From the sequence record ON529858.1: a stretch of 64,000 nt of DNA. One strand, written 5' to 3'. Below the pieces are notes generated by a model. The model worked only from the letters and a program-made list of their open reading frames with translations, ran no database searches and was not told where the DNA came from. The position numbers and the translations under genes are program-made. This document shows positions 2,940 through 50,003 of this stretch, one piece after another (the stretch's first letter is position 1; every line of letters begins with the position of its first letter).

Positions 2940-5900
2940 ATGACCGAACAAACCAGCTTCAAGATCGACTCCAAGGGGGCTCAGCGCGACCTAGACGCGC
3001 TGGCCTCCGCACTCGATCGCGCCGCCGGCGCCGCTGGTCGGATGGACCGGGACTTCGCCAAGGCGGCGCAGTCGGCCGACAAGAACCTCAAGACCGCGTC
3101 GCGCGCGATGGAGCGCTACGCCCAGATCGCGACCCTGCTGTCGCGCATCAAGTTCGCCGGCGACGGCGCAGGCCAGATCGCCAAGTTCGGTCAGGCCCTG
3201 GACTCGCTTGGCAAGGCTCGCTCGATCAAGCCTGAAACCATCAAGGGCTTCGTCAACCTCATCGACGTCGCCGCCCGCGCTCAGCGCATCGCCTTCAATC
3301 CCGCTTTCGGCAACTCGATCCGCGACATCGCCTCGGCGATGGACTCGCTCGGCCGCGCGCGCCCGCTGCGCGACGGGACCCTGAAGTCGTTCGTCCAACT
3401 CATCGACGTCACGTCCCGCGCCCAGCGCGTGCGGATCGACCCTGGCTTCGCCGCCGGGATGAAGAACATCGCCGGCGCCATGGACTTTGTCGGCCGCGCC
3501 CGCGCCATCCGCCCGCAGACCCTGAAGTCCTTCGTCGACTTCATCGAGATCGCGGCCCGCTCCCAGCGCCTGAAGTTCGACCCGTCCACGGCCCAGAGCC
3601 TGCGGGCGTTCGGCGCTGCCATCTCGCAACTGAAGCCGCCGGGCAAGGCCGCCATCGAACGTCTGGACAAGATGTTCGTCGTGCTGGCGAACGCCAAGAA
3701 GATTCCGAACGCCGCCGCGATCGCGCGTGACCTGGACATGGTCGCCGCCGCCGCCGGCCGCGCCTCCAACGCCCTCGGCGCCCTGCCCGCTCGTATGCGC
3801 AGCGCTGGCGGCGGTGGCGGCGGACGTGCGTTCCAAGAGACGGCCGCAGGCGCGAACGCCGCGACCAAGGGCTTCTCCAACTACGCCTCCGGCGCCGAGA
3901 AGGCCGGCAAGGGGACCTACACCCTGGGCGAGCGCCTGCGCGGTCTGAACCACCGGTTCTCGATCGCCTATCAGGCCGGCACCCTGTTCACCTCCATGTT
4001 CGCCTCCTTCACGCTGGGCGGGTTCATCAAGGGCATCTTCGATGCCTCGATCAACCTCGCGAAGCTGGAGAAGTCCATGACCTTCGCGACGCGCTCGACG
4101 GAGGCCGGTCACCAAGCGACCATGCGCTTCATCGGCGCCGCCCAGGAAATGGGTCTCAGCCTGAACTCGGTCTCCGAGTCGTTCGGCCGCTTCTCGATCT
4201 CGTCGGGCGCCGCCGGCATGTCGCAGGCTGAGTCGTCGGAAGTCTTCATGTCCGTCGCCCGCTCGCTGCAAGTCGTCGGCGCGTCCGCCCAGCAGACCGA
4301 ATACGCGATGTATGGTCTGACGCAGATGATTCAGAAGGGCAAGGTTTCGTCCGAAGAGTTCAACCGTCAGATCGGTGAACAAATCCCCGGTAACGCCACG
4401 GCCGGCGCCATGGCGATGTCCAAGATTCTCGGCCGCAAGGTCGAACTCGCCGAGTTCTTCGACATGATGCGCAAGGGGCAAATCATGTCGAAGGAGTTCT
4501 CGATCGAGTGGGCGCGCGCCCTGAACTCGATGTTCGCTCCCATGCAGGGGATGCTCCAGAACCGTCCTGACCTCGCCGTCAACCGCCTGAAGAACGCCTT
4601 CACGATCTTCCAGCAGGAGATCGGCAAGAACCGCTTCATGACCGAGATCGGCGTCCAACTGAACCGCCTCGCGGGTCTGTTCGGCAAGGTCGAGAACGGC
4701 GTCTTCAAGCTGCATGACCCGGTCCGGGAACTTGCCAAGCAACTCGGCCACAACCTCGCCAACGGCGTGCGTGTGATCGGTGACGCCCTGGTCTGGGCGT
4801 TCGAGAACATGGACAAGCTGATCCTGGCCGGCAAGGGCATGGCTGCTCTCCTGGTCGGCTCGACCTTCTTCTCCTGGGGCAAGAGCGCGATCGAGGCCGC
4901 CGGCAAGATCATGCTGATGGTCGGCGCCATGCGCGCCGCCAAGGTTGAAGCCGCCGCGACCGCCACGGCGAAGACGGTCCAGGCCGCCGCCACCACGCCC
5001 GGCATCGTCGGCGCGGGTGCGTCGACGGCTGACATCATCGCCCAACGCAACATGCGCGGCATCGCGCCCACGGCGGTCGGCGGCTCTGTGACCACCGCTC
5101 AGAAGTTCGCCTCGAACAACGAATACGGCGTCAACACCTTCGCTCGCCCGACCGGTCCCGACGGCAAGCCCGCCCAAGGCATGGGCGCACGTCAGTTCGG
5201 CCGCCGCGCCCTGTCGCCCGCGCTCGCCAATGCCGGCGCGGCTTCCGCTGCTGCCTCGGGCGCAGGCCAGATCGCATCCGCCGGCACCGCCGCTGCGGGC
5301 GCGGCTCCCAAGGTGAACATGCTGAGCGGCGCCATCCGTGGCCTGGGTCTGGCGTTCGGCGCCTTCTCGCTCCTGGCGATCGCCGCCGTCGCAACCCTGG
5401 CCGTCTTCTCGGACAAGCAGGTCGAAGTCGCCGGCAAGTCCGTCAAGGGCGGAGACATTATGATGGGCTCGCTCGACGTCGTCGGGAAGTCCTTCAAGGA
5501 TTGGGCCAAGACCACCGGCGACAGCATCACCGGCGTGTCGGGTTCGTTCGACTGGCTGGACAAGAACGCCGGCGAACTGATGGTCGGCCTGATGGCGGCT
5601 GTCATCACGATCGGCAAGACCTTCCTGACCGTCTTCACCTCGATCGGCAAGATCATCGGCACCGTCGTCGCCAACATGATCATCCCGGCGATGATGGGTA
5701 TCTCCAAGCTGGCGAAGGGCGACATCATCGGCGCCGCCGAGACCTTCCTGAAGGAATCCTTCACCGGCAACGCCAGCCGCATGATGGAAACCGCCCGCGA
5801 GATCGGTGGAGACTTCGTCGCCGCCGCCGACTACGAAGGCACCGCCACCTCGATTCGCACTGCCGCGATCGGGCGCGCCACCGACCGCAACGCCGCGAAC

Positions 5901-29460: not shown

Positions 29461-29711
29461 GGTGTCGTTGTTGCCTTGGCGAGACCTGCACGCCGGCGCC
29501 GGCGGAGGTTATGGATGTGGAAGCCGCCGATGATGAATCCCTGAGCCAGGAGGAACCAGGAGTGGGTCATCAGCGCGAAGATGGTCCAGGGGATGATCGA
29601 ACCGAGGTTCAGCCAGAGCCCTAGACGTTGCTGCTCGCCGTCGCGGCCCAGGAGCCATAGTGACGTGATCACCATGACCGACCCGACCGCTTCGGCGATG
29701 TGGACAAGCAT
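29457..29711 (-). CDS. Small membrane protein between nrdA and nrdB
   Basis: 84 aa, three hydrophobic segments, overlaps both neighbours. Confidence 0.55.
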   Translation of the reverse strand: MLVHIAEAVGSVMVITSLWLLGRDGEQQRLGLWLNLGSIIPWTIFALMTHSWFLLAQGFIIGGFHIHNLRRRRRAGLAKATTTP

Positions 29712-32527
29712 CAGCCTTCGCAGTCGATGCAGGTGGCGTCGGCCATGGGGCTGAGAGCCAGTTGACGGGCTTCGTCCGAAGCCTGATCCGAGGCCTGGGA
29801 GGCGTCGGAGACGATCGTCTTGCGAGCGATCTTGGTGTTGGTGTTCTCGGCGCGCTTGGGCGTCGTCGAGCGCAGGTAGTAGAGGCTCTTCAGGCCGAGT
29901 TCCCAGGCCATCCAGTGGATTTCGGACAGGTAGGCGGCTTCGACCGAACCGTCGCCCGGCAGGAAGATGTTGATCGACTGCGCCTGACAGATTTCGGGAC
30001 CCCGGTCGGCCGCCAGGATGATGATCGCGCGCTGGTCCAGTTCCATCGCGGTCTTGAAGACCTTCTCGACGTGCGCCCAGACCACCGGATCGACGGTGAC
30101 GCCGATCTGCTCGAACGGGGAGGGGACGTCGTCGCCGTCTTCGTCGACGGTCGGCGTGTTCAGGCCGGCGACCGAGCCGTCGTTGCCGACGATCAGCTTC
30201 CAGACTTCCTCGGTGTCGATGCCGAGTTGAGCCAGCTTGGCCTTCAGGTAGATGTTGCGGACCGGGAAGGAGCCCGACAGCGTCTTGTGCAGGTAGGCGT
30301 TGGCGCGGTGAGGCTCGACGGACGGCGAGGTGCCGCCGCAGAGGATCGACGACGAGGCGTTCGGCGCGATCGCCAGCTTGTGGGCGAAGCGCTCGCCCGT
30401 GCCTTCCATGTCCGGGGCTTCACCACGCTCGGCGCCCAGCTTCAGCGAGGCGGCGTCGGCGTGCTGACGCAGGTGACGGAAGATCGCCTTGTTGACGACG
30501 CGGGCGTGCTCGCTCTCGAACGGGATGTCGTGCTTCTGGAGGTAGGCTTGGAAGCCCAGCAGGCCCAGGCCGATCGAGCGCTCGCGCATCGCCGAATAGA
30601 TGGCGTCCTTCATCTGCTCGGGCGCCGTGTCGATGAACACCTGGAGGGCGTTGTCGAGCATCCGCATCAGGTCTTCGATGAAGCGGGGGTCGTCCTTCCA
30701 CTCGTCGAACTTCTCGCCATTGGTGGACGACAGGCAGCAGACGGCGGTGCGCTTGTTGCCGAGATGATCCCGGCCGGTCGGCAGGGTGATCTCGGTGCAG
30801 TTGCCGGTCAGGTAGCCGTTGAAGACGATGCGGTTGCGGCCTTGCTCGGTTCCGCAGTAGGTGGCGGTCTTCCAGGGCAGGGGATGCAGGTCGGCGACCA
30901 CCGGCGACTTGAAGGGACGCTCGGCGCCGGGCGTGCGGACCTGGGTCAGGACGCAGCCAGCTTCGATCAGGGTGTTGACGTCCCAGGCGGGCAGGGCGAA
31001 GCCGTTCAGGGTGTCGGTCAGGCGGATGCGCGGCGTGAGGCCCACTTCCAGCGCCAGACGACGCATCTCGCGGATCAGGTCGCGATTGGTCGAGCCCAGG
31101 CTGAGCCACTTCACGCCGTCGATGTCGATCCAGTCGGCGCCGGCGTCCAGCGCGCCCGCCAGCCACATGCGGCGCGTGGCGTAGCTGAACTCGAACGGGA
31201 CATGGCCGGAGGCGATCGTCGTGGGCTCGTAGCGCACGGTCGTCAGGGCGTCGTCAGCCTCGGCGTCGACCGAGTGCGTGAACAGGCGCTTGAACAGGGC
31301 CTCGGGCGAGCCTTCGGCGATCGTGACCGCCAGACGGTTGCGGTCCTCGAACCCGGCCAGGGTGGCGTAGCCGGCGGTGTAGGCCTGCTCATCCGTGGGC
31401 TGGGCGTAGCCTTCGACCGACAGGGGCAGGTTGGGCGCCTCCAGTTCCAGGCCGATCGGCAGGGCGCCGGCGCGGTGCTCGACGCCGTCCTTGTCGTAGA
31501 ACTTGTGCTCGGGGGTGCAGTCCAGGAAGTCGCCGTCCTCGAACCAGACGCGGACCAGATCGGCGCTGTCGGCCGTCTTGACGATCTCGACGGGGCTCCA
31601 GTCCTGACCATTCCACAGGTCATGCGTCGAGCCGGCCAGGGCGCCGATCGGCATGTGACCGTTGCGGGTCAGGACTTCGGTGTCGCCGGTGACGCAGAGG
31701 TTGGACTGCTTGACCTTCAGGCCGAGACGCTTCTGGGCCTCGGGCAGCGCAGCGTTCGAATGATCGACGAAGTGCATATAGGGCTCGCCCGTCTGCATCC
31801 GGGTTTCGAGCATCAGGCGCCACAGGTCGCGGGCGCGCACGGTCTTGATGACCTCGCGGGTCTTGGGCGAGCGCAGGTGGAACGGGCTGTCCGAGCGCAC
31901 GGCGCGCATGAACTCGTCGGTGATGTTGACCGCGTTGTGCAGGTTCTCGATCTTGCGGTTCCGATCGCCGCCGGTCGACTTGCGGGCGACGATGAACTCT
32001 TCGATCTCGGGGTGGTCGATGTCGAGGTAGTTCGCCATGGAGCCACGGCGCGTGCCGCCCTGGGAGACGGCGAGGATCAGGCGGTCGTCGACGGCCTGGA
32101 AGGGCATCACGCCGGTGGACGACGAACCCTTGGAGGTCTTCTCGCCGGCCGAGCGCAGTTCGCCCCAATAGGAGCCGATGCCGCCGCCCATGGAGGACAG
32201 CCAGATCACTTCGTCGTAGTGGGCCGAGATCGACTCGCGGCTGTCCTCGACGGCCGTCAGGAAGCAGGAGATGGGAAGGCCGCGCCCGGTCCCGCCGTTG
32301 GACAGCAGGGGCGTGGCGAACATGAACCAGCCCTTGGAGACATAGTCATACAGACGCTGGGCGTGCGCTTCGTCGTCCGCGAAGGCGGCCGATGCACGAG
32401 CGAAGGCTTCCTGGGGCGACTTTTCGTCGCCGACAAGGTAGCGTTCCTTCAGGGTCTGGAGAGTGAAATCACTCAGAGCGTCGTCGCGCGAGAGGTCGAT
32501 GGTGATGGCGCGAGGGCTCACAGGCAT
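29711..32527 (-). CDS. nrdA: Class Ia ribonucleotide reductase alpha subunit, intein-containing, no ATP cone
   Basis: FATPLLSNGGT, PISCF, GGTRRG, QSNL/CTEI, APNASSS, LKSLYYLR, C-terminal CIDC. Confidence 0.95.
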   Translation of the reverse strand: MPVSPRAITIDLSRDDALSDFTLQTLKERYLVGDEKSPQEAFARASAAFADDEAHAQRLYDYVSKGWFMFATPLLSNGGTGRGLPISCFLTAVEDSRESISAHYDEVIWLSSMGGGIGSYWGELRSAGEKTSKGSSSTGVMPFQAVDDRLILAVSQGGTRRGSMANYLDIDHPEIEEFIVARKSTGGDRNRKIENLHNAVNITDEFMRAVRSDSPFHLRSPKTREVIKTVRARDLWRLMLETRMQTGEPYMHFVDHSNAALPEAQKRLGLKVKQSNLCVTGDTEVLTRNGHMPIGALAGSTHDLWNGQDWSPVEIVKTADSADLVRVWFEDGDFLDCTPEHKFYDKDGVEHRAGALPIGLELEAPNLPLSVEGYAQPTDEQAYTAGYATLAGFEDRNRLAVTIAEGSPEALFKRLFTHSVDAEADDALTTVRYEPTTIASGHVPFEFSYATRRMWLAGALDAGADWIDIDGVKWLSLGSTNRDLIREMRRLALEVGLTPRIRLTDTLNGFALPAWDVNTLIEAGCVLTQVRTPGAERPFKSPVVADLHPLPWKTATYCGTEQGRNRIVFNGYLTGNCTEITLPTGRDHLGNKRTAVCCLSSTNGEKFDEWKDDPRFIEDLMRMLDNALQVFIDTAPEQMKDAIYSAMRERSIGLGLLGFQAYLQKHDIPFESEHARVVNKAIFRHLRQHADAASLKLGAERGEAPDMEGTGERFAHKLAIAPNASSSILCGGTSPSVEPHRANAYLHKTLSGSFPVRNIYLKAKLAQLGIDTEEVWKLIVGNDGSVAGLNTPTVDEDGDDVPSPFEQIGVTVDPVVWAHVEKVFKTAMELDQRAIIILAADRGPEICQAQSINIFLPGDGSVEAAYLSEIHWMAWELGLKSLYYLRSTTPKRAENTNTKIARKTIVSDASQASDQASDEARQLALSPMADATCIDCEG
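30800..31696 (-). mobile_element. Intein (299 aa) inserted immediately before the thiyl-radical Cys of NrdA
   Basis: Begins CVTGDTEVLT and ends FNGYLTGN followed by C; removal restores QSNL-CTEI; LAGLIDADG-like remnant WLAGALDAG. Confidence 0.92.
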
Positions 32528-47807: not shown

Positions 47808-47894
47808 TGGAGGAATGTGGCGGAATCGAACCGCCGGGTCTCTCGACCATCACAGATTTGCAGTCTGTGGCCTTACCACTCGGTCCAACATCCC
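47808..47894 (-). tRNA. tRNA with GCA (Cys) anticodon and long variable arm
   Basis: GGGAUGU/ACAUUCC acceptor, ACAGA-CUGCAAA-UCUGU, GGCGG-UUCGAUU-CCGCC, U73, encoded CCA. Confidence 0.88.
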
Positions 47895-49122: not shown

Positions 49123-49151
49123 TTGACACAGGGTGTCAACGAGCATATAGG
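49123..49151 (+). promoter_or_regulatory. sigma70 promoter of the tmRNA-tRNA operon
   Basis: TTGACA-N17-TATAGG. Confidence 0.8.
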
Positions 49152-49156
49152 GGAGA

Positions 49157-49570
49157 GATCGAGCAGATGCCTTCGGGCTGAAAACTGTGACATGAAAGAC
49201 GGGCCGGACTCGGGTGCGATTCCCGACGGCTCCACCAAAAGCGCCCATCCGGCATGTCAGACCTTCGGGTCGGTGTCAGGGGATGAGGCTAGTCCCCGGC
49301 GAAGAGGTGTCGTAGAACGCGCCCTCTACCGAAAGCCAGGGTGGACGCTTTTGTTGGGGCCGACCAGATTCGACGGGCGTTGGTAGTGAAGTGGGTTCGA
49401 TGGGTGGCTCCCCCAGCCAAGCACTGACAAATGTCGCTGCAAATGACAACGCTCCGTTCGCGGTGCGTGAAGCCATCGCCGCCTAATAAGCGGTAGAGGG
49501 GTGTCCGGAGGGGCGCCTGTCACAAAAAGCCACTCGCCTCCGGGCCGGTGGTTCCCTCCACCACCAGTTT
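49157..49570 (+). ncRNA. ssrA: Circularly permuted two-piece tmRNA (3' boundary approximate)
   Basis: Acceptor piece ending CUCGGG-UGCGAUU-CCCGA-CGGCUCC-A-CCA (49237) precedes the coding piece starting GGGGCCG (49356); G3-U70 pair; tag ORF ANDNAPFAVREAIAA* at 49439-49486; inter-piece pairing UGUGACA/UGUCACA. Confidence 0.93.
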
Positions 49571-49663
49571 CCAAAGGTGGGCTGCAACCTCCTACGTCGT
49601 GCTTCTCGGAGGCGACGGGTGGACCGCACCAAGCGCGGTCCTGACAAAGCGCAGCACATTTAT

Positions 49664-49742
49664 CGCGGGATAGAGGAGTCCGGTTGTCCTCGTCTGCCTC
49701 ATAAGCAGAAGATCGGGGGTTCAAATCCCCCTCCCGCATCCA
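49664..49742 (+). tRNA. tRNA-CAU, initiator-like (C1:A72, A11-U24) but lacking the three G-C anticodon-stem pairs
   Basis: CGCGGGA/UCCCGCA, UCUGC-CUCAUAA-GCAGA, GGGGG-UUCAAAU-CCCCC, U73-CCA. Confidence 0.92.
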
Positions 49743-49876
49743 TTCTCCTGACCCTCTCATCCGGTGCAACTCCGGGCGGGCGCAACCCGTGGGGGTATGG
49801 AGTGAAGCCCAGGAGCCGGAGCGATCCGTCCGCTGGGCTGGGCCGGTCCTGCGGGGCCGGCCCCGACTTTCTTAGG

Positions 49877-49961
49877 CGTGCGATGGCCGAGTGGTCTATG
49901 GCGGCGGGCTCATAACTCGCTGGAGCAATCCGCGTTGGTTCGAATCCAACTCGCACGTCCA
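49877..49961 (+). tRNA. tRNA-CAU with class II long variable arm
   Basis: CGUGCGA/UCGCACG, GCGGG-CUCAUAA-CUCGC, V-arm UGGAGCAAUCCGC, GUUGG-UUCGAAU-CCAAC, U73-CCA. Confidence 0.9.
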
Positions 49962-49970
49962 AGCCTTCCG

Positions 49971-50003
49971 AACCCCCGGCGCCGCATAGGCTCCGGGGGT
50001 TTT
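49971..50003 (+). terminator. Intrinsic terminator of the tmRNA-tRNA operon
   Basis: AACCCCCGG...CCGGGGGTTTT. Confidence 0.75.

Follow-up and report, generated by a model that had tools for sequence, protein, structure and literature searches.

An initiator-type tRNA and a probable long-armed elongator tRNA-Met in the tmRNA module of Brevundimonas phage vB_BgoS-Bajun

We propose that the two CAU tRNA genes of Brevundimonas phage vB_BgoS-Bajun encode the phage's own initiator tRNA (tRNA-1, or M1) and a long-armed elongator tRNA-Met (tRNA-2, or M2). We place the probability of this reading at roughly 0.6, with the charging of tRNA-2 predicted from sequence. tRNA-1 can be recognized as a phage copy of an alphaproteobacterial-type initiator tRNA. 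tRNA-2 has a class II-shaped body, and by the textbook rule a long variable arm is confined in bacteria to the tRNAs for serine, leucine and tyrosine (plus selenocysteine). The phage tRNA type to which tRNA-2 belongs is widespread in phages and appears to be new relative to the literature searched: none of it, the phiCbK genome paper included, was found to describe phage tRNAs for Met, Cys or Lys with a long arm, in a search whose coverage was incomplete.

The window, i.e., the whole stretch of DNA analysed here, is the last 64 kb (64,000 nucleotides) of record ON529858.1, the 207,261-bp genome of a phiCbK-like member of the Dolichocephalovirinae, with which BLAST aligns the region at 100% identity. 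Both tRNA genes, each labelled just tRNA-Met in that record, are called in agreement by ARAGORN and Rfam RF00005 (56.4 and 54.3 bits, against a gathering score of 29), and the CCA end is encoded in each (Table 1). They are the only CAU tRNAs of the phage. ARAGORN assigns its tRNA set to 18 amino acids, without Ala, Lys and Phe, and the peptide deformylase gene sits within the main tRNA cluster.

The two genes belong to a module with the order methylase, long tRNA-Cys, tmRNA, M1, M2, small ORFs and helicase, which recurs in ten other phages (phiCbK, Karma, Rogue, RBC8, CcrBL10, Colossus, CcrSC, Kikimora, Marchewka and Kabachok). ARAGORN calls the tmRNA of the module in four of the 11 phages, and tRNA-Cys(GCA) is long-armed in ten of them. 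Orthologues of tRNA-2 were located by gene neighbourhood and not by sequence match; a BLAST search of tRNA-2 against the phage collection returned only the self-match, and no full-length cellular BLAST match to tRNA-2 was found. Because orthologues of both tRNAs lie at the matching neighbourhood in ten other phages, neither gene is a chance hit. For comparison with cellular tRNAs we used three alphaproteobacterial genomes (G125, G081 and G384) as proxies for the host class, rather than the host genus, chosen by their two-piece tmRNAs with ANDN-type tags.

Table 1. Features of the tmRNA/tRNA module and flanking signals, in positions of the 64,000-nucleotide window.
Feature	Position	Strand	Basis
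tRNA-Cys(GCA), 87 nt, long-armed body like that of tRNA-2, U73	47808..47894	-	ARAGORN, Rfam
Permuted two-piece tmRNA, close upstream of tRNA-1	49145..49577	+	ARAGORN tmRNA*; RF04321, 87.9 bits; RF01849, 57.4 bits
tRNA-1 (M1), initiator-type, CAU, 79 nt with CCA	49664..49742	+	ARAGORN, Rfam, phage orthologues
G+C-rich hairpin of 10 pairs, then CGACTTTCTT; ends 4 nt before tRNA-2	49840..49872	+	Consensus match only
tRNA-2 (M2), class II-shaped, CAU, 85 nt with CCA	49877..49961	+	ARAGORN, Rfam, RNAalifold
Inverted repeat CCCCCGG...CCGGGGG, then TTTT; 12 nt past tRNA-2	49973..50003	+	Read from sequence; loop beyond the limit of the hairpin scan

The acceptor stem of tRNA-1 contains a C1xA72 mismatch followed by G2:C71, C3:G70 and G4:C69, and is identical to that of the G125 initiator. 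The D stem (GAGG/CCUC) yields A11:U24, the anticodon stem (UCUGC/GCAGA) yields U29:A41, G30:C40 and C31:G39, and the discriminator is U73. In each proxy genome, one 77-nt initiator tRNA aligns with tRNA-1 over its full length at 77-80% identity. Shared with these alphaproteobacterial initiators are the CAU anticodon, the C1xA72 mismatch with its three neighbouring pairs, A11:U24, G30:C40 and a pyrimidine at position 73; the cellular tRNAs differ in A29:U41, G31:C39 and C73, while tRNA-1 has a D loop that is 2 nt longer and a D stem of its own sequence. Three consecutive G:C pairs at 29-31/39-41 are not found in tRNA-1, and the proxy cellular initiators hold two of the three. A two-G:C stem and pyrimidine 73 are thus both normal in these proxies of the host class and do not indicate a loss of initiator identity. 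The C73 and A29:U41 of the proxy initiators are a departure from the E. coli rule (A73, three G:C pairs).

Across the 11 phages, G2:C71, C3:G70, G4:C69 and G30:C40 of the tRNA-1 family are invariant, and position 1:72 (C:U, C:A or U:A) is mismatched in nine phages and U:A in two. Formyltransferase determinants comprise the C1-A72 mismatch, helped by A73, G2-C71, C3-G70 and G4-C69 (PMC9976931), and in the E. coli initiator G30:C40 is the essential one of the three anticodon-stem pairs (Shetty et al., PMC5389676). We thus picture tRNA-1 as a host-class initiator copied into the phage and slightly degenerated, which would be methionylated via its CAU anticodon, formylated owing to C1xA72 backed by G2:C71, C3:G70 and G4:C69, and accepted at the ribosomal P site via G30:C40.

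The C31:G39 pair of tRNA-1 occurs in Bajun alone among the 11 phages. We view it as a lineage-specific deviation that may carry some efficiency cost. Alternatively, tRNA-1 could have lost initiator function in Bajun through this pair and persist as a weak or elongator-like Met tRNA; in E. coli, an initiator variant with cg/GC/cg at 29-31 sustains growth, but poorly (PMC5389676). Such a loss is improbable, as the acceptor-stem formylation determinants are all present together with G30:C40, and one of the three G:C pairs is already missing from the host-class initiator. The retained C1xA72 mismatch also speaks against it, since this mismatch bars elongation use in E. coli.

tRNA-2 is built on a 7/5 cloverleaf with C1:G72 (G1:C72 in orthologues), G4:C69, G18 G19, a TTCGAAT T loop and discriminator U73 (C73 in the Kikimora orthologue). 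Its anticodon loop, CUCAUAA, has the canonical 7 nt with CAU, U33, A37 and A38, and the anticodon stem includes G29:C41, a G30.U40 wobble and G31:C39. The D stem has 3 bp, and the D arm matches those of tRNA-Ser in the proxy genomes (similarity 0.85-0.9 for Bajun). The variable region of 13 nt, U-GGA-GCAA-UCC-GC, folds into a hairpin of 3-4 bp capped by a GCAA loop.

M2 measures 84-89 nt in all orthologues but that of CcrSC, in which M2 and tRNA-Cys are 77 nt each and have normal variable loops of 5 nt. In each of the 11 M2 orthologues the acceptor, anticodon and T stems preserve all of their 17 pairs, with several pair types at many positions. RNAalifold, applied to the seven distinct long-armed sequences, returns the cloverleaf together with a variable-arm helix, and compensatory (two-sided) changes occur at 10 of the 23 consensus pairs, the extra arm included. 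Across orthologues the arm has 3-5 bp, mostly followed on the 3' side by three unpaired bases, and its helices (GGA/UCC, GGG/CCC, GGGA/UCCC, AGGG/CCCU and AAGGC/GCCUU) vary in sequence while the pairing stays constant. This conservation and covariation rule out a pseudogene or chance hit, and by the same comparative evidence tRNA-2 is a real tRNA under selection. The G29-G30-G31 run is restricted to Bajun, Kikimora and, as A29, G30, G31, CcrSC; the remaining orthologues have C31:G39, so the run is no conserved initiator feature.

These structures agree with the initial annotation of positions 49664-49961 in everything it described: two CAU tRNAs, U73 in place of A73 in both, C1:A72 and A11-U24 without a G29-G31 stem in tRNA-1, and C1-G72, a Ser/Leu-like D-loop and a class II variable arm in tRNA-2. 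Its G29-G30-G31 run in tRNA-2 is also present, with the nuance that 30:40 is a wobble pair. The interpretation built on them fared less evenly. A class II-shaped CAU tRNA that is real, conserved and unusual stands; the idea that the two genes split initiator identity does not, given that tRNA-1 is ordinary within its initiator-type family and that most M2 orthologues lack the G29-G31 run. The charging of tRNA-2 by LeuRS and its modification by lysidine, both suggested at the same time, are likewise not upheld by the evidence on discriminator and codon usage given below.

With bacterial elongator tRNA-Met, tRNA-2 shares the CUCAUAA loop and a paired position 1:72. MetRS recognition is anticodon-driven, to the extent that tRNA-Val given a CAU anticodon is as good a substrate as tRNA-Met (PMC9976931). 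Internal AUG codons make up 374 of the 16,378 codons (22.8 per 1000) in the 46 annotated genes of the window. The proxy elongator tRNA-Met (5' strand GGUUCGG) further shares G2:C71, U3:A70, C5:G68 and G6:C67 with tRNA-2. It differs in having a class I body with a 5-nt variable loop and A73, against the 13-nt variable hairpin, 3-bp D stem, Ser-like D loop and U73 of tRNA-2. No proxy tRNA matches more than 9 of the 14 acceptor-stem positions of Bajun tRNA-2. Among the M2 orthologues, those of phiCbK, Kikimora and Marchewka match the proxy elongator tRNA-Met at 11 of 14 positions, and five of the seven pairs in phiCbK and Kikimora are as in that tRNA.

We therefore favor the following model, in which we infer each charging, formylation and decoding step, for tRNA-1 as for tRNA-2, along with any benefit of the arm. 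tRNA-2 would be methionylated by the host MetRS reading the CAU anticodon, kept from formylation by its paired 1:72 and so left free for elongation, and used to decode internal AUG codons of the phage. The extra arm would be the mark of a common phage body type and would not redefine the amino acid. U73 would keep LeuRS and TyrRS off tRNA-2, and the short arm would disfavor SerRS. Together, tRNA-1 and tRNA-2 would be components of a near-complete phage tRNA set.

The case against LeuRS and TyrRS comes from the discriminator. E. coli LeuRS requires A73 but neither the arm nor the anticodon, and TyrRS relies on A73 and U35 (PMC9976931). A73 is present in all 18 phage tRNA-Leu and both tRNA-Tyr parsed, and tRNA-2 departs from them with U73, which argues against charging by either enzyme; the LeuRS route of the initial annotation is accordingly unlikely.

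SerRS is the one serious rival, because it ignores the anticodon. It could charge tRNA-2 with serine, alone or beside methionine, such that serine would enter at some AUG codons. Serine identity lies chiefly in the variable arm (PMC9976931), and the class II-shaped body of tRNA-2, its Ser-type D arm, G2:C71 and C11:G24 are all in keeping with it, as are the acceptor stems of the Marchewka and Colossus orthologues, which match proxy tRNA-Ser(GGA) at 12 of 14 positions, G7.U66 included. Nor is U73 a bar to SerRS, since the two tRNA-Ser genes of Bajun have U73 as well. The geometry of the arm points the other way. In phage and proxy tRNA-Ser the arm takes up 16-20 nt, its helix of 5-6 bp flanked by a single unpaired base on either side; the 3-4 bp in 13 nt of tRNA-2 fall short of this, and the three unpaired bases 3' of the arm in most M2 orthologues resemble tRNA-Tyr. 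The CcrSC orthologue, which has U73 and agrees with Marchewka and Colossus in acceptor pairs one to four, is armless, and its class I body makes it no SerRS substrate. In the same phages, the tRNAs for Lys, Asn, Trp and Cys have long arms as well; serylation of all of these would wreck translation. Finally, when the phage ribonucleotide reductase alpha is compared with four cellular homologues, its AUG positions coincide with M (16), F/I/L/A (33) and S (2), i.e., with Met or hydrophobic residues and not Ser, in a check that covers one protein and cannot detect low-level misincorporation. Serine charging of tRNA-2 is, in our assessment, unlikely.

tRNA-2 might instead act outside translation and, as a decoy or sponge, occupy a nuclease or toxin that the host directs at tRNAs. 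Some phage tRNAs are known to counter anticodon nucleases, and a phage-restricted long-armed body without an explained purpose would suit such a role. However, the features of tRNA-2 under selection are those of translation (7/5 cloverleaf, anticodon loop, U33/A37, G18 G19, T loop and CCA), and it fills the sole elongator-Met slot of a near-complete tRNA set. The short arm, the class I orthologue of CcrSC and the long-armed Lys, Asn, Trp and Cys tRNAs disfavor serine charging and the decoy role alike, and we give the latter little credence. A tRNA-Ile2 role, in which TilS converts C34 to lysidine and AUA is read as isoleucine, would fit the CAU anticodon with A37 and A38, the paired 1:72 and the fact that many phage CAU tRNAs are of the Ile2 type, but it is very improbable, because AUA is almost unused (3 of 16,378 codons in the 46 window genes, or 0.18 per 1000) and the role would be purposeless, and because proxy tRNA-Ile2 (GGGCC.., C4:G69, C5:G68, A73) differs from tRNA-2 (G4:C69, C5:G68, U73).

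As a long-armed elongator, tRNA-2 would stand apart from the known class II tRNAs (Ser, Leu and bacterial Tyr). It shares with them the long variable arm and 3-bp D stem, its D arm being near that of tRNA-Ser, and departs from them in its CAU anticodon, in U73 rather than the A73 required by LeuRS and TyrRS, and in an arm shorter than that of tRNA-Ser. Allo-tRNAs, whose identity is reportedly serine, offer a second comparison. They too combine a long arm with an anticodon other than those of Ser, Leu or Tyr; their acceptor/T stems are 8/4 or 9/3 (PMC5389517), whereas tRNA-2 has the standard 7/5 and is predicted to carry methionine.

The body type of tRNA-2 and its kind of location within phage tRNA clusters are shared with other long-armed phage tRNAs (Lys, Asn, Met and Cys). 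Within the subfamily, the complete tRNA complements of six phages were parsed. Every tRNA-Lys found in the main clusters of phiCbK, Colossus, Kikimora and CcrSC is long-armed (87-91 nt), and all four phages have U73 in this tRNA; tRNA-Lys of the proxy genome has A73. Long-armed tRNA-Asn occurs in four phages and long-armed tRNA-Trp in two, all with G73. The discriminators of the long-armed Asn, Trp and Cys tRNAs suit their own amino acids, with Lys (U73) as the exception. In the proxy genome G125, long arms are found on Leu, Ser and Tyr tRNAs only. Bajun tRNA-2 lacks the stem-GAAA-stem-CAU arm motif that most of its long-armed phage counterparts have.

Beyond this subfamily, a search of IMG/VR with a pattern of CAU loop, long spacer and T loop matched at least 119 loci. 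Among the 119 matches listed, ARAGORN identifies 53 CAU tRNAs with a variable region of at least 10 nt; 31 of these 53 have a 1:72 mismatch, 24 have an initiator-type acceptor stem, and most have A73, unlike Bajun tRNA-2 with U73. The mismatches and initiator-type stems indicate that long-armed initiators exist in phages too. Many unrelated viral contigs of IMG/VR were observed to carry long-armed CAU tRNAs with a 1:72 mismatch, G2 C3 G4 and up to three G:C pairs at 29-31. When 401 bacterial genomes sampled from the class of the proxies were searched, the pattern matched 13 times, never in a tRNA, and a reversed control gave 16 matches. We also considered U73 as a general guard against LeuRS. 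It would fit the phage Lys and Met tRNAs; it fails on the A73 of most long-armed IMG/VR CAU tRNAs listed and on the M2 of CcrSC, which has U73 on a class I body.

A tentative and rather doubtful extension is that the extra arm is functional and distinguishes a class of tRNAs specific to phages (Met, Lys, Asn, Cys and Trp), by which phage tRNAs keep working when host tRNAs are attacked (e.g., by escaping defence nucleases or toxins) or are recognized by a phage factor. If so, Bajun tRNA-2 would be a defence-proof methionine tRNA. If long arms mark a phage-restricted and conserved set of tRNAs for Met, Lys, Asn, Cys and Trp, one may ask how synthetases blind to the anticodon, most of all SerRS, are kept from charging its members, and what advantage the arm confers. 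The set also bears on annotation: the two "tRNA-Met" labels in these phage records mask an initiator and a probable, unusual elongator, and isotype predictors may misread a long-armed elongator such as that proposed for tRNA-2.

Several signals accompany the genes. The hairpin that precedes tRNA-2 is terminator-like and may be a processing or attenuation element; the region contains 3 sites of this type, where shuffled sequence would lead one to expect 2.6. The inverted repeat past tRNA-2 likely marks the end of the tmRNA/tRNA transcription unit, opposite a convergent gene. No sigma-70-like promoter was found near tRNA-1 or tRNA-2, and no Met-rich leader peptide ahead of M2 in 10 phages. The Karma/phiCbK version of the locus is present in four RNA libraries, only as contigs of 10-19 kb, which report the presence of the phage and not transcription or maturation of the tRNAs. 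A motif, GTCAGGGGATGAGGCTAGTCC..CGGC, recurs in the tmRNA gene of Bajun (window positions about 49270-49300) and in the M1-M2 spacers of phiCbK-type phages and CcrSC, and the spacers of Kikimora, Marchewka and Colossus contain T-arm-like segments.

The main tRNA cluster (record positions 132800-138800) holds further unusual genes, given here in positions of the cluster: a long-armed tRNA-Trp(CCA) of 88 nt at 522-609, a long-armed tRNA-Asn(GUU) of 86 nt at 5086-5171, and a tRNA-Gln(UUG) at 4953-5030 whose D arm is Leu-like. In the tRNA-Asn, both the D arm and the variable arm are very similar to their counterparts in the phage tRNA-Leu(GAG). This pattern suggests that these genes arose via remodelling of class II tRNA genes. 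The tRNA-Arg(CCG) called by ARAGORN at 3550-3633 of the cluster is probably false; it overlaps the start of peptide deformylase, has a poor acceptor stem and is without CCA.

Two other observations concern the window. Its tRNA-Cys(GCA) has G3.U70 in Bajun only, with U:A or G:C in the other phages. Because alanine identity depends mainly on G3:U70, the Bajun tRNA could conceivably be charged with both Cys and Ala. Compared with its cellular homologues, ribonucleotide reductase alpha (29711-32527, minus strand) has an insertion of some 300 aa, at residues about 279-576, for which Pfam reported no intein family. The insertion starts with CVTGDTEV after SNL and ends with ..LTGN before CTEI, and it looks like a putative intein in the active-site motif.
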